Positions 6,301-62,261 of a stretch of 64,000 nt of DNA are shown piece after piece; positions within the stretch are counted from its first letter, which is position 1, and every line of letters begins with the position of its first letter. The notes beneath the pieces are model-generated. The model searched no databases. It had not been told where the DNA came from and saw only the letters and a list, made by a program, of their open reading frames with translations. The translations under genes and the position numbers were made by a program. Source of the stretch: Iphione sp. A-MEVVRFRX5 (taxonomy: Eukaryota). The DNA is taken from positions 25,668,001 through 25,732,000 of the forward strand of contig OZ320319.1 of NCBI GenBank assembly GCA_976226885.1. The letters run 5' to 3'.

Positions 6301-6339
6301 CGGTCTGGCATGTCTCCATAACTGAGCAGGGCATGCATA

Positions 6340-6446
6340 GTGACGGCATGGATAACAGGGCGAGTCATTAGCGGATCGTTCAACCATGACAAGCACAGAG
6401 TATATAAGCCTGGCAGAATTGAGATCGACCTCTCACTCCTCGCATC
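6340..6446 (+). repeat. Split direct repeat A1 of element 1 (copy A2 at 10632-10738), containing TATA-like TATATAAG at 6401-6408
   Basis: Exact 107-bp direct repeat read from the sequence; TATA-like motif lies about 70 nt upstream of the gag ATG at 6475. Confidence 0.95.
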
Positions 6447-6474
6447 GGGACCAGAGAGAGCACAACGAGCCACG

Positions 6475-7782
6475 ATGTCTGCACCAGAGGACCTGACGAG
6501 CCAGGGCGAGCAACCACCGGCGAAGGAGAAGGCTGCCCGCCTGAAAGTCACAGAACGTCTAGATAGGCTTGAAAAAGCCATGGACGATATATCACAACTC
6601 AAATCTCACATTTTGTCTCTTTCAGCCACAATTGCTGCCAACCAGACCTTGCCTGATCCAGACCCAGACCCGAGCAACGAGGGCCAGCAGACTGACTCAG
6701 TACCAGGTCCTAGCGGCACCAGTTCACAGATCAACGGGAACAACATGCCGCTACAGAGAACCGGTTCTGTACCTGTCCCGACTACTTCTCAGCCCGCCGG
6801 CCAGCCTGAGGTGATGCAAGTACAGTACAACAGCCTACAGCCGAGACTGCTCGAGGGAACGTGCCCGTCAACAACCCCAGGGCTACATACAACAGTACCG
6901 CCCGTTCAGACGAGGACGCCGGCCACGTGGACACCAGCAATGCAGCATAATCCAGCCGCCATGCACCAGCCTACAGACTACTTCCCGAGGCGACAACAAC
7001 CGTCTACGACAGGCTACCTCCCGAACCCGGCAACACTTCGCAGCGGCGCCCCAGTGCAACACTACATAGACTCCTATTTGGAGGCCACCGCCCCATGGCT
7101 CCAACAGACAAATGAAAATCGAGGTAACGTTGACTTGAGGGTTCGCAGCCTCATCCCCAAACCCTATATGTACGTCCAGAAGGACGGGGTGACTACATTC
7201 AAACAAAAGAATGAATATAAGGAGAAAATCACATATCATGAATTTCTCCCTTCATATCTTATAATGTTAAAGGACGAGGCTGCAATCCCCAGTCAAGATA
7301 AGCCATACGTACTTGAACATTTATTGCATGTCACGCAGGACGCCCAGCGGCGCCCGTGGCATAATGTCAGACGGTGGACAAACAACATTTTCGACATGAT
7401 AGAAAGAAACGAAATAGGCTGGGCAAATTCTCATGAAATAGCATATGAACGGTTAATGGTATCAATGGCCCCTGTCGACCCAGCAGAAATAGTCGAGGTC
7501 CCATGTCTGTTGTTTAACACAGGTTCTTGTACACACAAAACTGACGCCCATGTAGAACAGGAGCTCAGATTGCTCCACGTATGCATGTTCTGCTATGCAC
7601 TCAGTGGAGCTCGACACACACACACAAATGTAGCATGTGGTAAACGCGCAAAAGCAGGACATATTGCCAAAGCAACCGGTCCACAACCCCAGAACACACA
7701 ACCGTTTCAAAAACAAAATCAGACAAGCAACTCACACCAAAACAACAACACTGCATACAGCAGACAGCCAAAAAACGATTAG
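6475..7782 (+). CDS. Gag-like ORF1 of element 1 (436 codons from ATG 6475); Q/P/T-rich N-half, Cys/His cluster near C-terminus
   Basis: Open frame 6340-7782; the ORF-track start is a GTG inside repeat A1 and the first ATG is at 6475 (MSAPEDL). Contains CLLFNTGSC...HVCMFC...HTHTNVAC. Confidence 0.85.
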   Translation: MSAPEDLTSQGEQPPAKEKAARLKVTERLDRLEKAMDDISQLKSHILSLSATIAANQTLPDPDPDPSNEGQQTDSVPGPSGTSSQINGNNMPLQRTGSVPVPTTSQPAGQPEVMQVQYNSLQPRLLEGTCPSTTPGLHTTVPPVQTRTPATWTPAMQHNPAAMHQPTDYFPRRQQPSTTGYLPNPATLRSGAPVQHYIDSYLEATAPWLQQTNENRGNVDLRVRSLIPKPYMYVQKDGVTTFKQKNEYKEKITYHEFLPSYLIMLKDEAAIPSQDKPYVLEHLLHVTQDAQRRPWHNVRRWTNNIFDMIERNEIGWANSHEIAYERLMVSMAPVDPAEIVEVPCLLFNTGSCTHKTDAHVEQELRLLHVCMFCYALSGARHTHTNVACGKRAKAGHIAKATGPQPQNTQPFQKQNQTSNSHQNNNTAYSRQPKND

Positions 7783-9623
7783 ATCAGGCCCCATTGAAAC
7801 AGGATGGGGTCAGTTCCCACAATAGCCGGGGACCAGACATCGATTTTCACTTGGTAAAACAAATATGTCAGACAGATGACTGTGACATAATGCACGCATG
7901 CACATTTGAGCAGCTGGCAAGATACAAAGCTAACACATGGCCACATATAGGGGTTACAGGCATAGATACACATCTCCTGTATATTTATAACGTAGTACGG
8001 GAGGATGGCCGCCCTAACTTACTGGGTGCAAGAATCCCAGTTCCGACAACAACTAATATCAAAGTTTGGCGAAATTACTTACAACAAGACAAGACTGATC
8101 CTCAGCTAATTGACCTCTTAACATACGGCTTTCCATTGGGGTATATGGGACCTGCTGATACGAAAGGAAAGAATACTAACCATCCATCAGCTAAGCAATT
8201 CCCAGAGGCTATAAATCAATACATCAAGAAAGAAATTGCCCTTGGAGCTGTTTTTGGTCCATTCCCTAACACTCCCTTCTCCCCTTGGATGCATATGTCA
8301 CCATTAATGACCCGCCCAAAGAGGGACTCATGTCAGCGTCGGGTAATCTTGGATATGTCCTATCCTGAGGAAGCCTCTGTGAATGCCTATATTGGCAAGA
8401 ATATGGTGCTGGGCGTGGTCAGGGACCATTCCCTGCCCACAGTCCAGGCACTTCTTGCTACAATTAGGCAGATGGGGGGTAACCCGTATTTGGCAACGGT
8501 GGACATAGCTCGGGCATACAGAAATTTCTCTACATGTCCTTTGGATTGGCCGCTTCTGGGGTTCGGATGGGATGGACAATACTATTTTGACACCGCCATC
8601 CCGTTCAGCTCCAGAAGCTCGGCCAATCATATGCAAAGGATTGCCGATGCTATAATCCGCATAATAGCGAGGGAAGGTATTAAAGGGTACATGTATCTCG
8701 ATGATCTCATACTTGTTGCAGAGGGACAACTAGAAGCGCAGTCAGCGTTTGATCGGGCGAGACAGCTCTTAACAGAGCTTGACCTCCCAGAAGCTGCTGA
8801 TAAGGCACAGACACCTGCACAAAAAGTCACTTGGTTGGGAATAGACATTAACACCAAAGAAATGACAGTGTCCATCCCCCCACGAAGGATACAAGAGATC
8901 CTAGAGGTAGTTCAAAAAGTCAGCAAACAAAAGACGGTCTTGAAACACGATTACCAGAGTTTGATCGGGAAAATACTGCAGGTAGCACGTTGCGTCTCCC
9001 CCGCCCGAGTCTTCGTAGGAAGACTACTAGCAAAACTAAGAGAACAAAAAGGGAGGTATGTTAGAATAGATCATGATGTCAGACTTGACCTGAGATGGTT
9101 TATTCGATACTTATCTGCCTGGAACGGGGTGGCTATTATCCCGGAAGTCCACGTCGATCGAGAAATTGTGGTAGATGCATGCTTAACAGGTATTGGCGGG
9201 GCGGACGACTGGTCGTACTACGCCGAGCCTACCCCGAGCTGTTGTGAAGGTTTTCACATAACCCAGATTGAGGCAACTAATTTGTTGGTAGCTGTTCTGT
9301 CTTTTGTTGGAAAAGATGATGCTGGCAAGATAGTAAAAGTAAGGTGTGACAATCTAGCAGCGGTTGATAGCTTCAAGTCAAGGAAAGCGAAAGACCCAGT
9401 CCTCCAAAAATGCGCCAGGTCATTGTGGTTGCATCAAGCGAATTATAGTGTCTCCATTGTGTATGAACATGTTCCAGGTGAATTTATGCTTCTAGCAGAT
9501 GCTTTGTCGAGATGGTACGACCACCCAAAGCATCGATTCACTGCATCTGATTTCATTCATCATAAACAGCTAAAACGCATTACACCATGTACTGATGAGG
9601 TAATGTTATGGCCTGATTTATGA
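7776..9623 (+). CDS. Reverse transcriptase / RNase H ORF2 of element 1
   Basis: RVILDMSYP, DIARAYR, PFSSRSS, YLDD, RNase H DACLTGIGG / ITQIEATNLL / CDNLAAV / ADALSR. Frame is open from 7644, overlapping the gag end in the -1 frame; start coordinate reflects the proposed frameshift entry. Confidence 0.93.
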   Translation, partial: RLDQAPLKQDGVSSHNSRGPDIDFHLVKQICQTDDCDIMHACTFEQLARYKANTWPHIGVTGIDTHLLYIYNVVREDGRPNLLGARIPVPTTTNIKVWRNYLQQDKTDPQLIDLLTYGFPLGYMGPADTKGKNTNHPSAKQFPEAINQYIKKEIALGAVFGPFPNTPFSPWMHMSPLMTRPKRDSCQRRVILDMSYPEEASVNAYIGKNMVLGVVRDHSLPTVQALLATIRQMGGNPYLATVDIARAYRNFSTCPLDWPLLGFGWDGQYYFDTAIPFSSRSSANHMQRIADAIIRIIAREGIKGYMYLDDLILVAEGQLEAQSAFDRARQLLTELDLPEAADKAQTPAQKVTWLGIDINTKEMTVSIPPRRIQEILEVVQKVSKQKTVLKHDYQSLIGKILQVARCVSPARVFVGRLLAKLREQKGRYVRIDHDVRLDLRWFIRYLSAWNGVAIIPEVHVDREIVVDACLTGIGGADDWSYYAEPTPSCCEGFHITQIEATNLLVAVLSFVGKDDAGKIVKVRCDNLAAVDSFKSRKAKDPVLQKCARSLWLHQANYSVSIVYEHVPGEFMLLADALSRWYDHPKHRFTASDFIHHKQLKRITPCTDEVMLWPDL

Positions 9624-10455
9624 TTTCCAGACCCAGTGGCACGTCGCCTGGTGGCGGAAGCGGAACGGCTAGTTGCCAGGGCAAGGTCGGCAGGTACACT
9701 TGCAAATAGGAAGTCAGCTACCCGAACTTATCTGTCCTTCTGTTTCCGTTTTAACGTTTCTCCACTACAGCCCACGGCACTACAGGCGTGTATGTATATA
9801 CGGTATCTTGCAAGCTTCTTAGCTAGCCCAGCATCTGTATCCAATGCTATTTCAGCCATAAGAGAGTATTTAAGAGACCACGACAGCCATGAATCAGGCT
9901 TTACGTCGAGGCAGGCCAAGTTGGCCCTCGACGCGGTAAATAGGAGTAAGCAGCATGTTGTTCAGAGGAAAAGACCGTTTGAATCGTCTGAGATTAAGAA
10001 AATATTGTATGCCACCCTCGCACAACCTTATGCACTCATCTTAAGGCTCGCTTTTATGTTGATGTTCTACAGGGGGCTGCGCCAGTCTGAGGTAGCCCCC
10101 CGCAGTGTTGTGTCCTTCGATCCTGATTGTCACCCAATGAGAGCTGACTTTGCTGTGGTAAATGGAAGACTAGTTGCGAGACAAAAGTGGTCCAAAACCC
10201 AGCAATTGTACTCACAAAATAGAGACATAGTCTTGCCCAGCTCGCAGGATCCTATACTATGCTGGTATTGACCCACAGGGCACATCATTACATAGCCTAC
10301 GACGTACTGCAGCAACGATTGCCTATCAGGAAGGGTGTGACGTGTTACAGGTCAAGCACTTTGGGACTTGGTCGTCGAACGCCTATCAAGCGTACGTTAG
10401 TACCAAGAATGCGTCTCAGGTGTCTGAGGTATTAGTAAATACTATAAACTCATAA
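9624..10455 (+). pseudogene. Tyrosine recombinase ORF3 of element 1, internally deleted and frameshifted near 10261
   Basis: N-part 9636-10271 has FYRGLRQSE (catalytic Arg box) and KWSKTQQ. Another frame from 10261 reads AGIDPQGTSLHSLRRTAAT...HFGTWSSNAYQAY to TAA 10453-10455 (H-x-x-R, H/W, Y). About 45-50 codons are missing relative to the element 2 YR. Confidence 0.9.
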
Positions 10456-10475
10456 TATCATAATTACACAAAGCT

Positions 10476-10956
10476 TGGCGAATTTTATCTCGATGTATCT
10501 CAATAATTTTAAACATTGTCTATTGACTGTATATTTATTCACATTTTACTGATCATGTGCAATAAAGAAGCACCCAAACTGTTTATAAACCCATGCCTCC
10601 ATAGTTATCTGTGGAACGAGAAGTGCTAATGGTGACGGCATGGATAACAGGGCGAGTCATTAGCGGATCGTTCAACCATGACAAGCACAGAGTATATAAG
10701 CCTGGCAGAATTGAGATCGACCTCTCACTCCTCGCATCCCACCCGCCACACCCTATATTTGTAACTATGTATCCATCTATTTGATACTATGTATTTACCT
10801 GGCGAATTTTATCTCGATGTATCTCAATAATTTTAAACATTGTCTATTGACTGTATATTTATTCACATTTTACTGATCATGTGCAATAAAGAAGCGCCCA
10901 AACTGTTTATAAACCCATGCCTCCATAGTTATCTGTGGAACGAGAAGTGCTAATGG
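10476..10956 (+). repeat. B1-A2-spacer-B2 terminal block of element 1; AATAAA in each B copy (10561-10566, 10885-10890)
   Basis: Direct repeat comparison as above. Confidence 0.95.
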
Positions 10957-34956: not shown

Positions 34957-36428
34957 GTGGTGTCGAACAATACCTTGCTTACATCTACCCCGAGAACACA
35001 GAATGGTTTTGATGAGATGACTGGTCAATACCCACTACCCCCTCGTGCAACTCCGGTGGATCCTCAGGATGCAGGTAGGCCTGACTCGTTTGACCATGTG
35101 AGTCTCACCTTATTGGAGGTGGGAAAAACTCTAGGGTTAGGTACTGATATGAACATACATGAACCTAGGCAACCTGAAATTAATGAAATGGATCTACATG
35201 GCATCCTTGCTATGGTAGTGCAGTCGCAGAATGAGATACAGCAAAGTTTAACTGATCTGCAGGAAAAGGCACAAAGTAGTCTGGCTCTAGGGAACCGATT
35301 ACAGAAATTAAAGACTCTGGCCTCGGTTGAAACAAAGATGGTATCGTTGACAAATACACTTGAGAAGTTATTGAAGAGTGACGAAGAGTGGAAGAAAAGC
35401 ATGACTGAAAAACAAAATTTAGCGATGCGGCGTGAACATGAGATGAATAGAAGAATGTATAATCTTGAGAAGCAGAATGATATGTTGAAGCGCAAGATGA
35501 ATCAGATGGAACTAGACTCTAGGAAATGTAATTTGCTGATAGACAATCTGCGAGAGATAGAAAGTGGAACAACGTGGGATCTAGTTGATGGTATTTTTAG
35601 ATGTGTCGACAGATTCTACAACTCTGACTCACTGTTGTCAGCTAAGAGGCTAGGCAGATTGGGGAAACGACCACGACCTATTCTGGTCCGCCTATCGTGT
35701 ATTGAGGCGAGGAATAGTATTTTGAGTAGGAGGGCGGAGTTACGTAAGGATGAATTGACAAGGTCAGTTTTCCTGAATGAGGACATTCCTGAAAGTCTAA
35801 AGGAAAAACACCGCCATTTGCATTTGATTGCTGAGCATGCACGTGGTCTAGGTTCCAAAGCCAGTGTAAGGGGGCTGTCGGTGAGGATTGATGGCGTTCT
35901 GTTTACGGAGGATAATATGAATTGTCTTCCTAAAGGAATATCGGTTGAGGAAGCGTGTATCAAGGAAGACGGTGTAAAGTTGGCATTCAGAGAGGAGCAT
36001 ACGGTATTTTCGGACTCTGCTCACACACCGTTCACCATTGGAGGTGACCGATTTGACTCTGTGGTACACTGGCTTTACTCTGAGAAAGCACGACTGGTAG
36101 GTGATAAGTCGCTAAGGCATCGAATTCTCTTAGAAGAAAATGCGCAGAAAGTCAAACAACTTGGCCGGTCTTGTCAACCACCACAGGACTGGGAGAAGCT
36201 TGAGCCTGAAGTTATTAAAACTGGCTAAAAGCAAAATTCTCTCAGAATAACCATGCATGTTCACTACTGAAGGGAACCTTGGCAAAGAAGATCATATTTG
36301 CCTCCAGGGACTCTAAAGCTAGTGCGGGTTGCAGTTTTCGTGACTTTGACCTGAGAAAGAGTGACTATACAGGTTCAAACCTATGTGGAGTATTGTTGGA
36401 AGAAGTTCGTGGCACCTTGACGAATTAA
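34957..36428 (+). CDS. LINE ORF1: coiled coil + RRM-like + C-terminal NADAR (YbiA-like) domain; 1-nt frameshift near 36226
   Basis: Heptad-rich region; RKCNLLIDNL, AKRLGR...RPRPILVRL, VFLNEDIPE; then FSDSAHTPFTIGGDRFDSVVHWLYSEKARLVGD...ILL...KQLGR...W. After the frameshift: KAKFSQN...LL.GT...ASRD...GSNLCGVLLEEVRGTL* (TAA 36426-36428). True start uncertain (GTG 34957). Confidence 0.8.
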
Positions 36429-36939: not shown

Positions 36940-37608
36940 ATGAGTATGCGTAGTAAAGTGCTGATTCTAGCAGATTCTAGGGGCAGATATTTAAATGAGT
37001 ACCTTCGACATGAGTGGCTTAATATGCACAATATATATGTTGACGTATATTTTAAGCCTGGAGCATCATTAGATACGATACTAAGTGCTTTGTTGTATTA
37101 TGATCTCTCTTCGTATAGTTTGATTTATATTTTTGCTGGCATTACAAGTATCTGCACGAGGGATAGCTATACTAAGTTATTGCTCCCTACCTTTGACAAT
37201 GTCAAGTCATGGACATTGTGGTTTACAACATTTAATTGGAAAATGTGTAGTAAGCTTGCCTCTGTGGACGGCTGTCCCCGAGTTGGTTACTTACCTATAA
37301 TGAGCATAAATTGGAGAGTGTACAGTAGTGATACATATTCTGAAGAGCGTCAGGTGTATGTATCGAACTGTGTGAAAGAGATGAATGGGATTATACATGA
37401 ATTTAATGACAATATGGGCATGTATACTGCAGGTACGGCCGAGCCAGTCCATCACTTCCAAGGTAGGCGCTATCGGTCTAAATTCAAGTATTTATGGGAT
37501 GGCTGCCACCCTAACCATGAAGCCTTGCGTGACTGGGGTGTTAGTATCACTCGAGCTATATCATTGATGTTTGGAGTTGGGGCTGTACATCCAGGGCATG
37601 CTTGGTGA
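36940..37608 (+). CDS. Free-standing SGNH/GDSL-type hydrolase (esterase) ORF, 222 aa
   Basis: Block I VLILADSRG, block II KPGA, block III-like FAGITSI, block V WDGCHP; ATG start and uninterrupted. Confidence 0.8.
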   Translation: MSMRSKVLILADSRGRYLNEYLRHEWLNMHNIYVDVYFKPGASLDTILSALLYYDLSSYSLIYIFAGITSICTRDSYTKLLLPTFDNVKSWTLWFTTFNWKMCSKLASVDGCPRVGYLPIMSINWRVYSSDTYSEERQVYVSNCVKEMNGIIHEFNDNMGMYTAGTAEPVHHFQGRRYRSKFKYLWDGCHPNHEALRDWGVSITRAISLMFGVGAVHPGHAW

Positions 37609-37652
37609 GTAGGAACATTATATTACCTCTGCTTGCTACCAATATCGTTACT

Positions 37653-40436
37653 ATGACAGTGTTGCATGTGGGCATGTGGAACTGCTGTAGTATCTTAGGG
37701 AAATTAACAGAAATATCAGCTTTGTTACGAGATGAAAAAATTGATGTCTTTGGTATTTGTGAAACTTGGCTAACAAATACGTTGCCAACGGGTATACTGG
37801 AGCAGCCAGGTTATAGTGTCTATCGTTTGGATAGAGACAGGATTGCGGTAAATAAGAAATGGGGCGGAGGGTTACTAATATATGTTAGGTCTGAATGGAT
37901 TGCAGAAGTAATTTCAGATGGTAGTTGGATGAGTCCGGATGGTGAAATTTTATGTCTGAAATTCAAGCCTGGGATGAGAAAGTGGCATTTATTATTCTTG
38001 GTATATAGGTTACCTAATGGAAACTTAGTAAACTTCCTGGATACATTACAAAGACTAGTGTTGTCCGTAAATAAGAATCATAAATACAAATTGACAATTT
38101 TAGGGGACTTTAACGTTGATATGTTAAAAAGCTCGAATCAAAGACGTAAATGTAATTCTATGGCCTCCTATCTTTCCTTGCACCAGGTTGTGTGTTGTAG
38201 TACTCATGATAATGGTGGATGTCTCGACCATGTGTATGCATCTGGGGACATTAAAAAGTGGAGAGTATGGAATAATGGTCTAAGTGACCATAAGATAGTT
38301 TGTGTAGATTACAAGAAGCTGGGAGCTAAGTTAAATAAAAGAAGGTATATTTGGAGACGAGACTCACGTGCTTACAATTTCCCATTATTGTGTGAAATGT
38401 TAAATGAATGTGACTGGGTTGGGGATTGTGAGGAGGTAGAGGTAATGTGGGAATGTTGGAAACACAACTGCATAGCAGTTCTTGATAAAATTGCCCCCTT
38501 ACAAAAAATTGAAGTCTGGGGAAATGAGTCTATAGTTCTTAAACCATTAATTATGCAGTGGAGAAAAGAGCGTATTTACTTTCGTAAAAAATGGATTCGT
38601 ACAGGCGTACAGGAGTACAAACATATTTCGAATTATTATCGGAACTTGATAAATAAAGAGATCAGGAAAGATCAAAGGGCAAACTTTCTAGGTAAATTAC
38701 GAAAATGTGGTCAAAATGAAAGAAGTTTCTGGTCGTTGGTAAATGAAGTAGTTTTTGGAAAGGTGAAAAAGACTAAGAATGTAAGTGTACGTGTGGATGG
38801 AGTATTATATGAAAATGAGGATGTGCCTGGAGTCATGAATCAATTCTTTATCGATAATGTAGGAAAACTAGCAAGATCTACCAAAACAGTGCATGGGGAT
38901 ATATATGTGCCTGCAAGTGAGTGTGAGTGTGTGATGAATGAATTTACAGAGGTGACATATAGTGAAACTGCCAAACTAATATCACTGTTGAAAATGTCTA
39001 AACCGTCAGGCTTGGAGTCAATAAGTATGAGATACATGAAAGATTGTCTTAAAGGAACTTTATACTACTTTACGTCCCTGCTTAATGTGTCGCTCAGGTG
39101 TGGTGTAATACCGAGCGACTGGAAAGCAGGTGTCGTGGTACCATTATTTAAGAATGGCAGTGTCATTGAATGTTCCAACTACAGGCCTGTTACGTTATTG
39201 CCGGCTCCCTCAAAGATTTTAGAAGAGGTAGTTCTTAAAAGAGTCAATATATTTGTAGAAAAGAATCAAATTCTGAATGCAGGACAATTTGGTTTCAGAG
39301 CTGGTCGAAGTACTATATCTGCTGCAGGCTATATGCTAAAACATGTTTATGATGCAATAAATGATGGAAAATATGTTGCTGCTGCATATCTTGATATGTC
39401 CAAGGCGTTCGACCTGGTAGACCACAAAACATTATTACAGAAATTATCTAGTTACGGCTTTAAGGGATTGGTGCTAAGGTGGTTTAGAGCATATTTGAGT
39501 AACAGGGTTCAATGTGTAAAAGTAAATGGTAGTATTTCATCTTCATTAAAAGTAACCACTGGGGTTCCCCAGGGCTCCATCTTGGGGCCCTGGCTTTTTA
39601 TTATCATGATTAATGATATTTTTAGGAGTATTTCACTATCTCGCCTAGTAATTTATGCTGATGATATAACGGTGGTATCTACCGGGTCGAGCGCCTTGGC
39701 ACTTAGGACAAAACTACAACTAGTGTTGAAACAAATACATACCTGGTGTTGCAATAATGCTCTTCTCTTAAATTTTAGTAAATCAAAGATAATGACCTTC
39801 GGCAAAGCGAAAGACTTTGTATTGGATGTTGCTATTGGTGATGCACACCTAGAGCAGGTTGAAACTTTCAAATTTTTAGGCTTGCATATTAACAATGATT
39901 TAAGTTTCTCTGAAATGGTGCAATACAAGGTCAAAAAACTGCAACAGGTATCATATTTAATAAGGCGTTCTTGCTTTTTGCTGGATATGAACTTGAGGAG
40001 GCAACTATTTGTAGCATGTATAACGCCGCATTTAGACTATGGATTAGCATTTGTTGTCGGTGCTACAAGGATTGACTTCACTAAGTTGGAAAATGCATGG
40101 TACAGAGCAATACGTTCATGTGTATTGGGTTTCTGGGAGGGTAGAACTGCAATCCTGAACTGGCTAGCTCTAAACAAAATACGAGATATGCGCAACAGAC
40201 TTGAATGTCACTTGTTACAATTAATTACAGATTTGTATGGTTTAGGAATATGTGAAAAAAGACCTATTGGTATCATGAGAAGGAGTACTAGTGTGCAGCT
40301 AGTATATGATAGGCCAAGGTTAAGTGTGTATCGGAATAGTTTTCTTGTAGAAGGGATTAGATTGTGGAATGAACTACCCACTGAGATACGGTGTTTAAAT
40401 AGCAAAGCTATCAAAGGGTTTATTAGTAAAAGGTGA
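37653..40436 (+). CDS. LINE ORF2: APE endonuclease + reverse transcriptase, uninterrupted
   Basis: MWNCCS, ICETWL, GGGLLIYV, LGDFNVD, LDHVY, SDH; YRPVTLL, QFGFR, LDMSKAFD, GVPQGSILGP, YADD, SFLVEGIRLWNELP. First ATG at 37653 (ORF track starts at GTG 37602). Confidence 0.95.
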   Translation: MTVLHVGMWNCCSILGKLTEISALLRDEKIDVFGICETWLTNTLPTGILEQPGYSVYRLDRDRIAVNKKWGGGLLIYVRSEWIAEVISDGSWMSPDGEILCLKFKPGMRKWHLLFLVYRLPNGNLVNFLDTLQRLVLSVNKNHKYKLTILGDFNVDMLKSSNQRRKCNSMASYLSLHQVVCCSTHDNGGCLDHVYASGDIKKWRVWNNGLSDHKIVCVDYKKLGAKLNKRRYIWRRDSRAYNFPLLCEMLNECDWVGDCEEVEVMWECWKHNCIAVLDKIAPLQKIEVWGNESIVLKPLIMQWRKERIYFRKKWIRTGVQEYKHISNYYRNLINKEIRKDQRANFLGKLRKCGQNERSFWSLVNEVVFGKVKKTKNVSVRVDGVLYENEDVPGVMNQFFIDNVGKLARSTKTVHGDIYVPASECECVMNEFTEVTYSETAKLISLLKMSKPSGLESISMRYMKDCLKGTLYYFTSLLNVSLRCGVIPSDWKAGVVVPLFKNGSVIECSNYRPVTLLPAPSKILEEVVLKRVNIFVEKNQILNAGQFGFRAGRSTISAAGYMLKHVYDAINDGKYVAAAYLDMSKAFDLVDHKTLLQKLSSYGFKGLVLRWFRAYLSNRVQCVKVNGSISSSLKVTTGVPQGSILGPWLFIIMINDIFRSISLSRLVIYADDITVVSTGSSALALRTKLQLVLKQIHTWCCNNALLLNFSKSKIMTFGKAKDFVLDVAIGDAHLEQVETFKFLGLHINNDLSFSEMVQYKVKKLQQVSYLIRRSCFLLDMNLRRQLFVACITPHLDYGLAFVVGATRIDFTKLENAWYRAIRSCVLGFWEGRTAILNWLALNKIRDMRNRLECHLLQLITDLYGLGICEKRPIGIMRRSTSVQLVYDRPRLSVYRNSFLVEGIRLWNELPTEIRCLNSKAIKGFISKR

Positions 40437-51609: not shown

Positions 51610-53671
51610 AGCCTGGACCCATTATAGACTGAGAGCTTGTTATCATTTTATCTGAGCACTGCCACACTCAAATCTGTTTATTTTCTTACCATTCCTCACA
51701 CCCTCATTAACAAACTAAAAGCCAGACTCATGTGCTTACCAGTGACATGATAGGATTCTAAATAAGACACGGAAAATTGACTCCCACTACAAAAAACAAA
51801 TCTGGCCACATGATTGGTATGGTTCCTATGTGGAGGTCCAATCCCCTCTCTCAGTTAACACTTTCTATTCCTTCATTTGGGCGTGGGTCTCCACTGACTA
51901 TAATGAGCAAGGGAAGAGGCTGACGAAGGAGGTACAAGAGAATATATAAGCGTGACAAAGTCCTTAAAGCATTTTCATCTTCTGCACCGCCTTATTCTGA
52001 GCAAACAACAAGGCGGTCGAACTTCTGAATTTTTTCTTTTAGAGGAAAGCAATTACGCCAGAATGTCATGATATATCTATACTAAAAAGATGTTTTCGGA
52101 AAGTAGTTACAATGAATAAAGGAAATTTGTTGAGATTTATACTGTCAAAGTCATTTTTGGAAAGACTTTATCTTCATTAGCTGATGTCTTTATTTACAAA
52201 CGACTGACAGCCTGGCACTATTGTTCAGTTGAGCATACAGTTACAGGTTTTCCGGATCAGTCATCCTTGTCTGCATCTGTATGGTGCTTCTGAAGTTGTA
52301 TTTAAACCCATCGTCCCGGTGTGTAAAGACCACCAGCAAGGATTGGTCAAATGTATCAATCTTATTTGAATGTTTCTTTCCGAAGCAAAGTGCCACGTTA
52401 TACACGTGCCTTGTCTCGTGTAATACATGACCTTAAGCTAGTTTCAATGCATTCCTCTCAGAGCATCCCATAAGATATTGGTCAGCTTGATATTTGAGTA
52501 CATGTACTATTATGCGCAACGGATGCCGTTATGATCCATTATTAATGTGTATGGATGAATCGAGTTAATTTATAATCCAATCCCCGACGGAAACTATAGG
52601 GGCCCAACAACGTGGAAATAACGTGGGTTCAAGCACACTGGTCTAGTAGCAGGGAAAGTATCCCCTACCAGCATACTATGATGAATGGAAATCATCCACG
52701 ATGGACGGACAAGACAGGGAGCCTGAGGCCGTAGAGATGACAACAGGGGCTCAACTACCAAAGTGAGGCGTCCAAAGAATGGGGCAACTATGGCCATTCC
52801 GTCCCAGCTGAGCGCGGCTCGGCGCACGACAGGAATGAAGCAAGGTGACCGGGACGACACACTGGCTCCATGCGGCGATAAAGACGCCCCGGCGCCGGAT
52901 CAGACCCATCCTACTGTCCTTCATGTCAAGAAAACGGCCATGATGCTCACGGAGTTGTAGCAATTTCTAGCTATAATCTGAAATGAGTAAAACGTACTCT
53001 CTTGTGTCGCATATACTCTGGAGAACAAAAAGAATATTGCCACGTAACCAGGTAGATGGAGTAATTGATCAATTGAGTTTAATGGGCGAAAGTTTCACCC
53101 AGAAGGATGTTTTACAAACAGCACTGTTTCATGATATATAAATGTCTATTCAATGTGAGGTTTTCCATGCGCCTGGTAATAGGAGGAAGACTGTTCAAGC
53201 CTACACCTCTCGGATAGTAGAAATCGTTGTGATAAAGGACACATCGCTGTCTTGACAAATCCAATCCTGGAGCTGTATTGACTTTGGTTGTTCCTTCTCT
53301 CACGATTCTACTGGTCTGCGATGATAACAGATTCGCCATAATGAGGTCCACTATACACACACACACATACATGAGGATGTCCATTACAATTGTTCCCACC
53401 TTTTACTTCAGAATAGTCCCAATCGGCTCAACATATTAAGTATGCCATCTACATATATATTTCAAATAAGGCGTTTATTTGTATATTGGCAAGGTCACAA
53501 CAACAACAGGATCATCTCACTATAACAACATGATGACATCACAATAGATACCATAACAACAACCTGTGTAAAATGGAATACTTACTTTGTCAACCGTCAT
53601 TCAACTGAGAATTTTCTTTGAGTGAAGACGTACTTCTCGGGTTGATACTGCCGTTCAGTCTTTGATAGTTC

Positions 53672-54628
53672 ATGATGGCGAAGCATTGTTCTAAGTGTAA
53701 CAAGAGACATTCCCCTCCGGTGGGGAAAAAGTGCCGTCATTTTGTTGATGATATCGAGGAGTCGTCGATGGATTTTCCTGTTTGCTCTGATTTTACAGGT
53801 GTTATCGATGATGCTCGGTCTGGTGAAAAAGTGACTCCCCAAAATGGTAGCGATGCTGTCTCCTCCTTGACACAACGTATTGGTAAATTGGAGGACATGA
53901 TAACGATGTTGGTAATGACGAAAGATTCATCGACATCGAATGCGGAGAAGGCTGCCGTTGGCGACGCAACTTTGAGCAAGCCGGATGTTGGTGAGAATTC
54001 AACTGACGATTCCTCATCAGATTCAAGTTCAAGTGATAGTGATGATGAAGATCGAAAGAAGCATAAGAGTAGATCAAAGTCGAGTAAAAAGACATTTAAT
54101 ATAGCTAAAGCTGCGAAAGTCAAGAAGATCGATAATTTTGATCAACTTATGCTCGGTTCTATAAATCTTGTGCAGCGACACCTGAAACGTAATGACGACA
54201 TTTCCGGTTATCTGGCACATCTGCAGTTTCTGTTAGAGAAACGAGTGAAAAACGTGTATAAGGATGCCTCCTTTATTGATTACGACAAAGATATTAGAAA
54301 AAAGGCAGCAAAGAAAGGTATTGCAAGCTTTAAGTTTGGCGATGATGAGCTTATTAGGAGCCACTTTTCGTTTGACATGATGCTGGGGGGTGGTTCGGCA
54401 ACAGGTCGTGGTGCTCAAAGTAAACAAAAGCCAAAGCGTCAAAACGACTTTTCTCGTAAATCAGACAAAGTTTGCTATCGTTTCAACAATGGAACTTGTC
54501 ATGACTCAAATTGCAATTTTAAGCATGCTTGTTTAGTGTGTGGCGGCTCAGACCACAGGGCCTATGAGTGTTCTCAAAACATTAATAATGCTGACAAATC
54601 CAAGGAAGCGAAGTCTAGTAAGAAGTGA
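53672..54628 (+). CDS. Gag-like ORF1 of element 2 (318 aa)
   Basis: N-terminal CSKCNKRH...C; C-terminal CCCH finger CYRFNNGTCHDSNCNFKH followed by CCHC knuckle CLVCGGSDHRAYEC. Confidence 0.9.
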   Translation: MMAKHCSKCNKRHSPPVGKKCRHFVDDIEESSMDFPVCSDFTGVIDDARSGEKVTPQNGSDAVSSLTQRIGKLEDMITMLVMTKDSSTSNAEKAAVGDATLSKPDVGENSTDDSSSDSSSSDSDDEDRKKHKSRSKSSKKTFNIAKAAKVKKIDNFDQLMLGSINLVQRHLKRNDDISGYLAHLQFLLEKRVKNVYKDASFIDYDKDIRKKAAKKGIASFKFGDDELIRSHFSFDMMLGGGSATGRGAQSKQKPKRQNDFSRKSDKVCYRFNNGTCHDSNCNFKHACLVCGGSDHRAYECSQNINNADKSKEAKSSKK

Positions 54629-56581
54629 CTATGTGACGACCCTATCAATACAGATCCTTTTTGTTGTTCTTTTCAAGTAAGAGCATTCCCAAGTTTGGAG
54701 ATGTATTGTACTATGACATGCCCCCTTAAAGTTGAGCATATGTTGGATGTCAACATGCTCAAGGGTTTTGCTTTGGATAATAATCTTGGTGATAAGTGGC
54801 ATATTGTGGATGTATGTGATAACCACAAATTGTTAGAATATTGTTCCTCCGCAGGGGTTAACTATAATTTGCCGCTATATATTGTATTTAATTCTAATGA
54901 TGTGATTAGAATTTATAAAGATTGTATGAACAATTCGTGCTGCTGTGTTCACCATGTCGGTGGAGTGAGAAGTAAGCTACTGCCCTGTCGTTTTTTCCGT
55001 GGATGTGCCTTTGGTATGTTAGATGCGAGCACTAGGGAATTTGTCTGGGATGGGGTTTGTGTCGGTTTCAAGATAGTACAGGATGGTTTTGAAGGCTCGT
55101 ATTTTTGCAAAAATTATAAAACCATCGAAGAGGAGCCGTTTCGTAGTGAAATGGATGAAAAAATTTTGAAGGAGTTGGATAGTGGTTTCATTTCTATGGT
55201 GAAGAATGTCCCCCGGTGTGTCCATGCCATGGGAGGGGTGCCTAAAGGAGATGGGTCACTCCGCCCTATCACAGACTGTTCGAGGCCAGAGGGTAGATCA
55301 ATTAATAATTTCATGGAAGGCCTGTATGAGAATTTCAGTTATAGCTCTGTGAGTGATGTGTGTGAGTTCTTGGAGGAAGGGGATTTCATGAGTGTAGTAG
55401 ATATTAGTAGTGCTTATCGCTCAGTAAGTGTGAGAGAGTCATGCAGGAAATTTCAGGGTTTTTGTTGGTACCTTAATGGAGAGAGGAAGTATTTTGTAAG
55501 TAATACCTTGACGTTTGGTCTGAAGTGTGCACCTTACATTTTTACCAAGTTGTCGGATTTCGTGGTGCAGGAGTATGTTTGGAGATCAAATGATAGCATT
55601 GTGAATTACCTGGATGATTTCTTGGTAAGGGGTGACAGTTTTGAGTCGTGTATGAGAAACAGAGGTTTTCTTACGGATATAATTGGTAATCTTGGTTTTG
55701 ATGTTTCGTGGAAAAAGGTGACTGACCCTAGCAAAAAATGTGTGTTTTTAGGGATAGAGATCGATAGTGAGGATATGGTATTGCGTCTCCCAGAGGGCAA
55801 ATTAGAGAAGATGCGGTTGATCTTTGAAGAAGTGATTGATTCAAAGAAGATGTCAAGGAAAGAGGGTGAAAAAGTCTCAGGTTTTCTCTCTCATTGTTTG
55901 ACTATTAGCAGTGGAGGGAGGACTTTCTGTAGGGCCTTGTATGATTTTGTGGAGGATTTGCCTAAGAATAATAAGAGGTCATTGATCAGAGATGAGGTAT
56001 TAGAAGATCTTAAATGGTGGTCAGTCTTTGCAAAATTGTTTAATGGTAAAGGGAAAATCCTTCATTGTCAAACTCCAAAGTTTGTTTGTTATACAGATTC
56101 GTCCTTTAGTGGTTTTGCTGGTGCCTGTGATGAAGACTGGTTCATTGGTTCATGGAATGGTGTTTCTGATGAGGTCGGTTGTGGACACAGGGAGAAGGTG
56201 CCTTTAAGTTGGGGAGATGAGAGGAATATAAATGTGTTTGAACTTTGGCCGGTTCTGGTTTCTCTGAAGAGATGGAGTCATTGTTGGAAGGGTAGTCATG
56301 TGCTCTTCATGGTAGACAATACACAAGTGATGTTTATGCTAAGAACTGGAAGGAGCATAAACAAAGTGTGTATGGGTTGGCTCAAAGAAATTTTTTGGGT
56401 TTGTATGGTTTATGATATTAGTATTTCGAGTGAGTATGTCAATACTAAAGACAACATTGTTGCAGATACTCTATCTAGAATTGATGTTGCTTGTGTTTCG
56501 GATGAAAGATGGCTAGAGTGGTCAGGAAGAGCATGTTGTAAGGAAGTTTTGGTTGGTTCCAGGTCTTCGAAGTTGCCTTGA
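54629..56581 (+). CDS. RT / RNase H ORF2 of element 2 (same frame as gag, directly after its TGA)
   Basis: RPITDCS, DISSAYR, TFGLKCAP, YLDDF, TDSSFSGF, INVFELWPV, VDNTQV, ADTLSR. No in-frame stop between TGA 54626-54628 and the ORF; first ATG at 54701. Confidence 0.93.
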   Translation, partial: LCDDPINTDPFCCSFQVRAFPSLEMYCTMTCPLKVEHMLDVNMLKGFALDNNLGDKWHIVDVCDNHKLLEYCSSAGVNYNLPLYIVFNSNDVIRIYKDCMNNSCCCVHHVGGVRSKLLPCRFFRGCAFGMLDASTREFVWDGVCVGFKIVQDGFEGSYFCKNYKTIEEEPFRSEMDEKILKELDSGFISMVKNVPRCVHAMGGVPKGDGSLRPITDCSRPEGRSINNFMEGLYENFSYSSVSDVCEFLEEGDFMSVVDISSAYRSVSVRESCRKFQGFCWYLNGERKYFVSNTLTFGLKCAPYIFTKLSDFVVQEYVWRSNDSIVNYLDDFLVRGDSFESCMRNRGFLTDIIGNLGFDVSWKKVTDPSKKCVFLGIEIDSEDMVLRLPEGKLEKMRLIFEEVIDSKKMSRKEGEKVSGFLSHCLTISSGGRTFCRALYDFVEDLPKNNKRSLIRDEVLEDLKWWSVFAKLFNGKGKILHCQTPKFVCYTDSSFSGFAGACDEDWFIGSWNGVSDEVGCGHREKVPLSWGDERNINVFELWPVLVSLKRWSHCWKGSHVLFMVDNTQVMFMLRTGRSINKVCMGWLKEIFWVCMVYDISISSEYVNTKDNIVADTLSRIDVACVSDERWLEWSGRACCKEVLVGSRSSKLP

Positions 56582-57506
56582 GGATCGATTGGAAGTCCTG
56601 AGGAGCCAAGCCTTCTCTAAAAACACCTTAAAGACAAGGCAAAGGCAGCAGAGAGTCTACATGAAGTTTTGTGAGAAGTTTGGTTATGCACCTTTTCCAT
56701 GTGGTCAAAAGCAACTGAAGCAGTATTGTGCCTTCTTGTCCTTTTCTATGTGTCCTAATTCAGTCCAGAATTACCTGAGTGGTTTGATGTACGAACATAA
56801 GAAATTGGGATTGGAATGTCCAGTTCTAGATGATGATATCAGATGGGTGATCCAGGGTTTTAAGAGAATTCATTCTTTACCCTCTAGATCTTCGGATGGT
56901 TTCTCTTTAGAGAATCTACTGAATATGTACAATGGTTTGAAGTTTAATTCAATTTTTGATGTTGTTTTTTGGGGAGCAACAGTGTTGGCTTTCCGGTGTC
57001 TTCTCAGGAAGAGACAATATACTGGGCGTGATGGAATTTGTAGAGGTGATGTGGATTTCCTGGTAGATAGAATGATTGTCAACATTAGGAAATCTAAAAC
57101 TGACCAGTATGGTATCTGTCCTAGGAAACTGGTTGTGTCTCCTTGTAGTAACAGAATTTTTTGTGCCATTTTCTGGTTGAAGATGATTTTTTCTCTGGTT
57201 AAAGTTGATTCAAAAATGCCTTTGTTTTCTTTTGTCGAACATGGTAAGTTTACTTACCTGGATTATGATAGGTTTGAGCTAAAGCTTACTAGCCTGGCTT
57301 CAACTGTAGGTTGTGAGGGCAAGTTTACTTCTCATTCCTTACGTAGGGGTGGTGCTACACATATGGCACGTATTGGCATGCCTGTTCATTCCATTAAACA
57401 TAGAGGTGGATGGAAGAGTGATGTAGTTTACACTTACATTAAACCTACATCAGACCAAATGTTAGTTAGTGATGCAAAATTTTGTTCTTCTTTGGGGTTG
57501 GCCTAA
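56553..57506 (+). CDS. Tyrosine recombinase ORF3 of element 2
   Basis: FRCLLRK (R box), RKSKTDQ, HSLRRGGAT (H-x-x-R), HRGGWKSDVVYTY (W...Y); no ATG until 56661. Confidence 0.93.
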   Translation: MVPGLRSCLEDRLEVLRSQAFSKNTLKTRQRQQRVYMKFCEKFGYAPFPCGQKQLKQYCAFLSFSMCPNSVQNYLSGLMYEHKKLGLECPVLDDDIRWVIQGFKRIHSLPSRSSDGFSLENLLNMYNGLKFNSIFDVVFWGATVLAFRCLLRKRQYTGRDGICRGDVDFLVDRMIVNIRKSKTDQYGICPRKLVVSPCSNRIFCAIFWLKMIFSLVKVDSKMPLFSFVEHGKFTYLDYDRFELKLTSLASTVGCEGKFTSHSLRRGGATHMARIGMPVHSIKHRGGWKSDVVYTYIKPTSDQMLVSDAKFCSSLGLA

Positions 57507-57780
57507 TTGTGCTCTAATACCCCCAATTAGTGTCTCTGTGTTGTTTACCTAATATTTCAAATAAGGCGTTTATTTGTATATTGGCAAGGTCACAACAACA
57601 ACAGGATCATCTCACTATAACAACATGATGACATCACAATAGATACCATAACAACAACCTGTGTAAAATGGAATACTTACTTTGTCAACCGTCATTCAAC
57701 TGAGAATTTTGTTTTTCTCTTGAATAAAGCCTAATTGTGCTCTAATACCCCCAATTAGTGTCTCTGTGTTGTTTACCTAA

Positions 57781-57804
57781 TATATATATATATATATATA
57801 TATA
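57781..57804. repeat. (TA)12 microsatellite at the right junction of element 2
   Basis: Direct reading; the remainder catatatat is at the left junction 53452-53460. Confidence 0.95.
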
Positions 57805-59400: not shown

Positions 59401-59488
59401 TCACTGGTATTTTTCGTACATTTATAACAGATCACTGACATTTTTCTTACATTTATAACAGATATTCACTGTTTTTTCTTACATTTAC
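59401..59488. repeat. Imperfect ~31-bp tandem repeat, about 3 units
   Basis: ttttc(g/t)tacatttataacagat..cactg units. Confidence 0.85.
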
Positions 59489-62261
59489 ATCAGTCATCCA
59501 GAGGCACAGATGAGCTAAATGAGCACCTTATTTTTCATTTGCCATAACTGCTTTCTAGCCGTTTTTTACAGGGGGTCCCGTGCGGGCAAACCTATTCTAT
59601 AAGAAAGATTTATTAGGGTATTGCATGTATAAATTTGGCCTATTAGGCCTGCACATAGCAAATTGGCCAGATGTATGAAGTTTGCATATCGGAGGATGTT
59701 TCCGAAATGCAAAAGTTTCCAGACGTGCATGGAAATATGCATAATGAATAACCTTTCTATGGGCACGAAACAGGACAAAGCGAAGATAAGGACAAATTTA
59801 ACATTTGAATACCTCATTCAATGTTACCATGTACATCTGTTGCTTTCAGGATTCATTTACATTAAAAACAAGCAAAATAAGCAAATACCACCTACCTACT
59901 GGCGCTCTATTTGTTTCAGGTTGTTACTGGAAACATATTTTTTAGGCTTTATGGGACAATAACAAGTACTACTAACATATATATATATATCAATAAGCAG
60001 TACTGGAGCAGTATTAATGACCTGAAAATGAAATTGTCATATTAGAGGTGTTGAAGCTGCGCGTTTAAAAACGTTTTAATTCGAGAGACTACCGCTTGTT
60101 GGCAGGCCGGTCTGAGTGGCAGCGTCGTGCTGTAGATGATAGTGGCGTCAGACACCAGGCAGACGCTGGAAGACAGGTTGAGAGTAGAGGCGTCACATGC
60201 TGACGCCTGTAACCTGCATGAGCCTTTAGTAAAGATTGCTTACTGGTAGAAGCGCCAACCATTCTCCATCTGCTCAGCATCAACTTTCGTTTGCCAGCAA
60301 ACTTTACATGCGCCACGTGTTTAGCTATTTGTAGGTATATGTATACCTAAATTCCTTTAAATGTTAAACCCATCACATTCCAAGGATCTATACCTCATAA
60401 GAGCCGTGACGAACTTGAAAAGCAACAATTAGAAGATATTTGGATGATACGATAGACATTACCACCATACCAGGTTGTACCAGAGAGAAAGTCGCTCTTC
60501 CTATGTTTTAGTGAGTTTTGGAGAAACTCTTTCCATCAACACTGGCTTAATAAACAAGGAACTACACATTGTTTGGGTAAGTTTTTCATTATTTTAGTAT
60601 CTCAAAAATCACTGATTGTCTGCAAAAGAACTGTACTTTATGTGAGCTATGGATAAACCGAGCGTACTGTATTAGAATTAGCGTTGCGCTACATGTTAAT
60701 GACAGCTAAAGCCGTGTGTATAAGGGAGAAATAAGGAGTTTTACACGAACACACGAGAACGTTCAGGAAGGGGGAACCTGCAGAAACCCTGTTACTTTCC
60801 CTTCAAGGACAGCGTGGAAGTGTACCATATGCATGGCTCAGCTCTCACGCCCATCGTTAGTGTATTGGAGCTGTATATTTTACACAAAGAATTTTCACTG
60901 CCCAAAATATGTGTCTATTCATCTGCAGGCAGGAAATATAGGGACCGAAACACAAGAACACGAATATTACGGCTTACAAAGGCTGAGCACAGTAGCATCC
61001 TCACCCCTGTTCTTCACTTAGATTGTAAAACATAAAATCACCACACGGCTAACATCGGAGTTCATCAATATGTGATATCCCCAGAGGTGATGCATTCGTC
61101 TGCAACATGAATACAATTGGGCCCGACGATTTGATTAAAATTGTAGCCGTAAATCAGGTTACGTACGCCTGCATGCAAAACATATTATGGCGAGATACAG
61201 GTACTTAATATTTGTGTGCACATGTGCAGCGAACTTATAAGAGCCACAATGCCAAGTATATTAAAATTCGATTCCCATTCTAATTATGTCTGTCGAAACA
61301 TTTACGTATTGAATTTCGAAGTCATTCTTTTCAAGGATTATCACGACATGCCATTTTCTTTTAAAATGGTAAAAAAGAGATACTGTATTACATGAATATA
61401 TTTCTATTGAGTAAACATAGTGTCCTTGCCATGTTCGTGGATTGTTCCACTTTTCCAATGCATGTAGCAGGTACATTATCGATCTCTTGTTCCCATAGTG
61501 GTTTTGTGAATGACTACGTCTGCCGGAACATTTTTACTCATGGAATTTCGAACTGATTCATTCAAGAATTATCATGACATTACCATTTTCCTTTAGAAAA
61601 TGGCAAAAACGATAGGTACCTGTATTGCATGCATGTACTTCAGTGTTTTCTATGTATGTACATTTACCAGGAACCTTAGTAATGAACGAAGACCAAAGCG
61701 GCGCAAATTTTACATTGACAATCAAAACACAAAGTAACTTTTTTGCATGGCCTCGTCTAGATAGAATCCTACATAGGATCGCATGGTCAAGAACGATCAA
61801 GAAAACATTGATTTTCCCAATTGTACTGTCACGTTCTGTTTCCCGACGCAAACATAAATCTCCATCAGGAGAGAGAAAACCGTTTACCGTGCCGCCAATA
61901 ACTAAGGCAATTGTTGCACGCGTATAACCGCAAGGAAAGCGGACCGTTGGCTCTTCTCCAGTCTGAGGCAGCCGAGCTCAGCTCAATAGGTGGGAGATGA
62001 TAATGGTGCATCAAGTACCCACCGTTCTAGTTACGGGTTACGACACCAGGGAGCAGGGCATACACCCATCTCCACTCTATCGGGTACAATCGGTCCAAGC
62101 TGCGCTTGGCGCTATTTCTGGCGTCAGCCTGCTTGTAGAGGCGTTGTTCGTAGCTCACCATTTCATTTATTTTCCGTTGGGTTTCTCTAGCCGCCCAACC
62201 CGTGTCCTTCCCTCTGTCTTTCTATCCTGCTAGCTCTTCCTCCCTGTCCCTGTCTCTTCGT

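Follow-up and report, generated by a model that had tools for sequence, protein, structure and literature searches.

How is a reverse transcriptase (RT) made when its coding region begins directly behind the stop codon of another gene, in the same frame and well upstream of any ATG? This question is raised by a retrotransposon, hereafter referred to as element 2, in a 64,000-nucleotide (nt) stretch of the Iphione sp. A-MEVVRFRX5 genome (assembly GCA_976226885.1, contig OZ320319.1, positions 25,668,001 to 25,732,000; hereafter the window, to which all coordinates refer). Element 2 is a complete Ngaro-type tyrosine-recombinase (YR) retrotransposon; it spans 53457–57783 (4.3 kb), with all its features on the forward strand, is structurally complete, and possesses three open reading frames (ORFs), of which the first is gag-like and the second encodes the RT. 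The junction between these two, at 54620–54637, reads AAG AAG TGA CTA TGT GAC. It consists of two lysine codons (54620–54625), the UGA stop of gag (54626–54628), which is the proposed readthrough site, and a CUA leucine codon (54629–54631), which completes the UGA-CUA leaky-stop motif on its 3' side. The two ORFs share one frame (both start positions leave a remainder of 2 on division by 3), so that a single in-frame stop parts the two coding regions, with no frame change and no slippery heptamer, and 24 codons (LCDDPINTDPFCCSFQVRAFPSLE) come before the first in-frame ATG, at 54701–54703. An earlier analysis of the letters alone (the sequence-only reading) had described exactly this arrangement, which I confirm, and had proposed that Gag-Pol is made by stop-codon readthrough. 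From the comparisons set out below, programmed readthrough of the UGA-CUA type, yielding a Gag-RT fusion, is in all probability the answer.

In order to establish whether the junction is conserved, relatives were gathered within the 1.18-Gb genome by two independent routes, from the gag side and from the RT side. On the gag side, a query of 501 nt spanning the junction identified 30 loci, with 68–77% nucleotide identity or less. TGA-CTA is present in 28 of these, while one has TAA-CTA and one TGA-ATT (TGA itself therefore being kept in 29 of 30), and in nearly all 30 loci the downstream frame runs on without a stop for between 100 and more than 590 codons. On the RT side, first-look candidates for a query of 240 amino acids, located wholly 3' of the stop, numbered more than 2065. 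The 150 that were scored are 48–78% identical, and most have stop-to-stop frames of 637–709 amino acids. For the best 30 RT-found loci, the RT frame was then followed in the upstream direction as far as its first stop. Three of them (L040, L058 and L060, all local) are decayed, with premature stops within the RT N-terminus, and were left out. In the other 27 of the best 30, that is in every intact locus (RT N-terminus 53–78% identical), the first upstream stop is TGA followed by CTA. In these 27 loci it is preceded by a Lys, Arg or Ser residue and then Lys ([K/R/S]-K), at the end of an in-frame gag ORF, and a CX2CX4HX4C knuckle is found in 26 of them, L046 having a degraded copy. The expectation of the sequence-only reading, that independent copies keep TGA-CTA in frame, is borne out by both routes. 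The outcomes that it had listed as speaking against it, a sense codon in other copies or a different frame relation, were not found in intact copies: among the 27 RT-found loci, the junction always holds a TGA stop in the same frame relation, and never a sense codon or a different stop.

Position counts across the 27 loci show that T-G-A-C-T-A is invariant, as is an A at each of positions -6, -3 and -2. Both lysine codons, AAA and AAG, are found immediately before the stop, and the base after CUA varies (T in 15 loci, G in 8, A in 2 and C in 2), with no fixed letter from there on. Several controls put this conservation in perspective. Six invariant leucine columns elsewhere in the alignment use four to six synonymous codons each, with CTA in only 1–6 of the 27 sequences; every one of about 65 conserved columns with four- or six-fold degeneracy is polymorphic, synonymous sites being saturated; and ORF2's own stop varies among 22 ORF2s, with TGA in 12, TAA in 7 and TAG in 3. 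The hexamer has remained fixed, well beyond what chance would produce, while silent sites and ordinary stops were randomised, which amounts to selection on the RNA sequence itself. On the evidence of these alignments, TGA-CTA is kept at the nucleotide level beyond coding need.

These observations also bear on the simplest alternative, that element 2 is one copy in which a nonsense mutation, or a mistake in the assembly, has put a TGA into what is normally a single gag-pol ORF. With the closest sibling of element 2 only 77% identical, this was a bare possibility to consider, and its probability is now close to nil. It was rejected because TGA-CTA is found in 27 of 27 and 28 of 30 independent, deeply diverged copies, none of the intact ones having a sense codon in its place.

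The region downstream of the stop was analyzed in the closest subfamily, using an alignment of 11 sequences covering 120 nt after the stop. This region aligns without a single indel, and in frame 0 there are no stops in any of the 11 sequences, while each of the other frames has 1–7. Counted over 20 codons, the other two frames after the gag stop are also closed, with 1–8 stops. The first ten codons after CTA (54632–54661 in element 2) form a hypervariable linker, with an entropy of 1.32, 1.56 and 1.38 at the three codon positions, i.e. essentially unconstrained, and yet the linker keeps a constant length and an open frame throughout the subfamily. From codon 12 onward a coding pattern is apparent, with an entropy of 0.50, 0.47 and 0.83 by codon position (columns 37–120). 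In element 2 this conserved start of ORF2 (CCSFQVRAFPSLE, 54662–54700) lies upstream of the first ATG, and includes the family motif F-S-F-P-x-L (here SFQVRAFPSL), which is found 15–25 codons after the stop in all 27 families, ahead of the recognisable RT domain.

No ATG is conserved at the beginning of ORF2. The first in-frame Met ranges from codon 3 to codon 176 across the 27 loci; it lies more than 100 codons 3' of conserved sequence in L045, L047, L051, L042 and L059, and in L036 and L037 an ATG is found two codons past the stop. An RT initiated on its own would thus lack a conserved start and forfeit a large part of the conserved protein, which speaks against a start at ATG 54701 and likewise against termination-reinitiation. 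Initiation at ATG 54701 was a further outcome that the sequence-only reading had set against itself, and the conserved coding sequence upstream of the first Met tells against it.

More generally, the RT could be made independently of Gag, by termination-reinitiation, or by non-AUG or internal initiation, with TGA-CTA serving that process or acting as an efficient terminator. Free RT might indeed be expected, as there is no protease to part Gag from RT. The ATG codons of L036 and L037 would suit such a process, as would the non-canonical stop contexts found in relatives from other samples (described below). However, besides the lack of a conserved start codon, reinitiation needs neither the same frame nor an open linker, yet the two coding regions are in frame, and the linker is open, in all 27 local loci and in all ten informative foreign ones. 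The efficient-terminator version also fits poorly, since UGA-C is the weakest termination context known, and not a strong one. I therefore consider independent expression of the RT unlikely.

It is also conceivable that the stop is removed at the RNA level, through a small intron, through editing, or by means of a subgenomic or spliced pol mRNA. In favour of this, a GTAAGA/GTGAGA sequence is present 50 nt downstream of the stop, but this GT lies 3' of the stop, where it encodes a conserved Val-Arg pair, and there is no donor matched by an acceptor on the two sides of the TGA. At ∼30 nt, the variable stretch that follows CTA is too short for an intron, and it is always open and a multiple of three in length, which would be needless if it were spliced out. 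The likelihood of such a bypass is very small.

The sequence-only reading had suggested a search, by covariation, for a downstream stimulatory stem-loop. None was found beyond background, nor any conserved stable structure within about 10 nt 3' of the stop. Compared to shuffled controls, the minimum free energy of the 27 loci gives a mean z-score of -0.34 for positions +3 to +102, and of +0.04 for +9 to +68, matching the mean values of control windows inside gag and RT (-0.59 to +0.03). The element 2 copy alone folds at a z-score of -1.66, in a single fold. For the 11 subfamily members, the RNAalifold consensus is limited to an AU hairpin of 6 bp (-1.8 kcal/mol), which begins 37 nt downstream and shows negligible covariation, and a search of element 2 against Rfam gave no match at E≤1, hence no selenocysteine insertion sequence (SECIS). 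By all appearances, the signal therefore consists of nothing more than the local sequence A-R-N-A-A-R-UGA-CUA, and involves no downstream RNA structure. Adenines immediately 5' of a stop codon favour readthrough, and the invariant A at positions -2 and -3 fits with this. For the 3' side, the sequence-only reading had pointed out that UGA-CUA is a known readthrough context in alphaviruses, which it called type II, and in cellular genes; the hexamer is indeed identical, and it is reported to be leaky in reconstituted mammalian translation, where ribosomes can elongate by one more step if CUA-GUA or CUA-UAC comes after the UGA (bioRxiv 10.1101/2021.04.18.440353). UGA-CUAG is the consensus of mammalian readthrough genes, as cited in the same study.

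A search with ORF2 yielded 402 homologues, with about 40–45% identity. I obtained the DNA around eleven of these, from at least six other samples; ten of the junctions are informative, while that of L079 is too decayed and was left out. In all ten, gag and RT are in one frame, with a single stop between them. The junctions read AAA-TGA-ATG (L061), AAA-TGA-AGC (L062), AAA-TGA-AAC (L063), AAT-TGA-GGA (L064), AAA-TAG-GAT (L065 and L066), GAA-TAG-GAT (L067), AGA-TAG-GAT (L076/L077) and AAG-TAG-GTC (L078), and in L075, where gag is decayed, the stop reads TAG-GAT. The last gag codon is commonly A-rich among these foreign relatives. The sequence-only reading had asked whether related Ngaro families keep TGA-CTA in frame: the single in-frame stop is kept in ten of ten, with contexts other than CTA (UGA-A/G, UAG-GAU). 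The presence of an in-frame stop in all ten foreign junctions makes a stronger case for a functional stop. Judging from these junctions, the in-frame-stop layout is clade-wide, and CUA is a context peculiar to this genome's radiation.

The foreign junctions also bear on the idea that UGA stands for one particular amino acid, be it selenocysteine or one assigned by a variant genetic code. In its favour, the families of this genome use no stop other than UGA at the junction. The lack of a SECIS, or of any other Rfam match in the element at the threshold given above, speaks against it, as does the use of TGA as a genuine terminator in 12 of 22 ORF2s, and no in-frame TGA is found in ORF2 or ORF3. 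In the foreign relatives, moreover, UAG is found at the same place. This explanation can be considered negligible.

Two further observations on the foreign sequences can be noted. UAG-GAU recurs at the in-frame gag/RT stop in several samples (L065, L066, L067, L075 and L076), and possibly represents a second conserved context for readthrough, belonging to a different host lineage. In addition, automated gene calls in public assemblies start the Ngaro RT at an arbitrary ATG, GTG or TTG, 0–33 codons past the gag stop in L061–L064, L067, L076 and L078, and up to 63 codons past it among the foreign homologues overall; the inconsistent N-termini of the database proteins are explained by this arbitrary choice of RT starts.

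The readthrough proposed here would operate as follows. Most ribosomes would halt at the gag UGA, producing Gag. A minority would decode the UGA with a near-cognate tRNA, UGA-CUA with A-rich lysine codons on its 5' side presumably providing a poor termination context; UGA is read as Trp, Arg or Cys in other eukaryotes. These ribosomes would continue in frame, through the short and probably flexible linker, into the RT/RNase H region, and the product would be a Gag-RT/RNase H fusion in a low and fixed proportion, comparable to the Gag-Pol of gammaretroviruses. As no protease is encoded, the fusion presumably acts unprocessed. That readthrough occurs, with what efficiency, and with which amino acid inserted, I infer from sequence comparison. 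The proposal made in the sequence-only reading, of Gag-Pol produced by stop-codon readthrough, is supported by the layout, by the conservation of the hexamer relative to the controls, by the coding constraint downstream of the stop, and by the lack of a conserved AUG.

Several points nevertheless weigh against readthrough. Ngaro elements are without a protease, so that a Gag-RT fusion would have to work uncleaved, and this is the main biological uncertainty. Without a stimulatory structure, the expected readthrough efficiency is limited. Finally, the contexts found in the foreign relatives (UGA-AUG, UGA-AGC and UAG-GAU) are not classic leaky motifs. The classic hexamer is thus dispensable in some elements, where either different contexts are enough or a further factor plays a part; the layout may depend on something besides the hexamer, or the mechanism may not be simple readthrough.

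The assignment of element 2 to the Ngaro type is based on its ORF order (gag-like, RT/RNase H, YR) and on its split direct repeats, which are arranged in the Ngaro order A1-[ORFs]-B1-A2-B2. Repeat A1, at the 5' end (53457–53619, 163 nt), is 99% identical to A2 (57552–57714), while B1 (57501–57555, 55 nt) is 100% identical to B2, at the 3' end (57729–57783). ORF1 (53672–54628) encodes a gag-like protein of 318 amino acids without any Pfam match, with a C-terminal Cys/His knuckle pair, CYRFNNGTCHDSNCNFKH followed by CLVCGGSDHRAYEC, and a basic tail ending in SSKK, knuckle and tail both being kept in 26 of the 27 RT-found relatives; a full-length ORF1 frame of about 319 codons is common to L032, L034, L035 and L037. 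ORF2 (54629–56581) is 650 codons long between the gag stop and its own terminator, and matches RVT_1 (E 1.1e-14). Its RNase H domain has no Pfam match in the element 2 copy itself, and PF17917 (RT_RNaseH) is carried by two of the 402 ORF2 homologues. ORF3 (56553–57506), the tyrosine recombinase, matches Phage_integrase (E 5.3e-07), and its translation shows the HSLRRGG...Y motifs. No match to a protease or to a DDE integrase (rve) was found by Pfam on any of the element 2 ORFs. The near-identity of the split direct repeats (99–100%) suggests a recent insertion; with the 501-nt junction query, the closest relatives in the assembly are ∼77% identical in DNA, and a near-identical sibling is absent.

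At the other end of the RT gene, ORF3 is in the +1 frame relative to ORF2, with a 29-nt overlap (56553–56581), and reaches its first Met 37 codons in. At 59401–59500, which is about 1.6 kb downstream of element 2, three to four tandem copies of a ∼31-nt unit (TTTTTCTTACATTTATAACAGA...) are found. As for the family as a whole, the many apparently intact copies, reflected in the long frames of most of the 150 scored matches, indicate a very large and diverse Ngaro radiation in this genome.

The window includes a second such retrotransposon, element 1 (about 6337–10956), which has its own split direct repeats, and whose RT shares no more than 21% identity with the element 2 RT (E 6e-16). Its gag frame ends in cc-A-AAA-AAC-gat-TAG, with the heptamer at 7770–7776 and the stop at 7780–7782, 3 nt apart, and pol is open across the heptamer in the -1 frame. 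The sole detectable relative of element 1 (L069) keeps a 15-nt block, ACAGCCAAAAAACGA, together with the TAG, in a region that is 68% identical overall. The region 7764–7800 of the window, with its A_AAA_AAC, is a candidate -1 programmed frameshift site of the textbook kind. The sequence-only reading had claimed that two related elements in the window use two different recoding strategies for the same junction. At the sequence level this stands, with putative readthrough in one and putative -1 frameshifting in the other, but to call them related is generous: with RTs 21% identical, elements 1 and 2 are distant Ngaro lineages that share only the Ngaro layout. Elsewhere in the window, an ORF at 34957–36225, upstream of the RT of a long interspersed nuclear element (37602–40436), has only a sub-threshold match to NADAR (30.4 bits, compared to a cut-off of 35.1).

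No account of readthrough, or of an in-frame stop, in Ngaro or DIRS elements was found in the literature searched, although the founding Ngaro papers may mention one. Taking the local and foreign junctions together, I lean slightly towards a broader view, in which readthrough would be the general and ancestral Gag-Pol strategy of a large cross-species Ngaro clade, and the first recoding mechanism for the DIRS order, with each host lineage having its own minimal context, UGA-CUA in this genome and UAG-GAU or UGA-A/G in others, and with other Ngaro lineages, such as element 1, using a -1 frameshift. On that view, this one genome, with its more than 2000 diverged copies, would offer a mutational library, made by nature, of a readthrough signal that needs no structure. 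Recoding for Gag-Pol is textbook knowledge for retroviruses and for some long terminal repeat retrotransposons. If the readthrough proposed here is correct, YR elements that lack a protease would also set their Gag:RT ratio by recoding, which would suggest that RT is packaged as a fusion, and an invertebrate-type mobile element would join alphaviruses and mammalian genes as a place where the UGA-CUA motif is used. Automated annotations that call ORF2 from arbitrary internal start codons would be corrected. Together with the -1 frameshift suggested for the distant Ngaro element of the same window, this would mean that the order has solved one problem in two ways.

The closest parallel is provided by the gammaretroviruses of the MuLV (murine leukaemia virus) type, in which, as in element 2, gag and pol are in one frame with one stop between them, and in which a low fixed fraction of fusion protein brings the polymerase into Gag assemblies. 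Readthrough in MuLV uses UAG-G plus an essential downstream pseudoknot. In contrast, element 2 has UGA-CUA without a detectable structure, possesses no protease to release the RT, and belongs to a type that integrates by means of a tyrosine recombinase. The stop between alphavirus nsP3 and nsP4, and those of the mammalian readthrough genes, share with element 2 the identical UGA-CUA hexamer and, very probably, an action through local context; element 2 and its relatives differ in that the base after CUA is unfixed, that A-rich lysine codons are added upstream, and that the host of the motif is a retrotransposon of the DIRS order. The -1 frameshifting of retroviruses and astroviruses at A_AAA_AAC has its counterpart in element 1, where the same heptamer is located at the equivalent gag/pol junction, and differs from element 2, which has neither a frame change nor a slippery heptamer. 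Lastly, compared to the Ngaro group of the DIRS order, element 2 is alike in its ORF order, its split direct repeats, and its lack of a protease and of a DDE integrase. The ORFs of YR retrotransposons have been called "frequently overlapping" (PMC6681497, PMC9210276); unlike in the elements so described, ORF1 and ORF2 of element 2 do not overlap, and are separated by a conserved, and probably leaky, stop.

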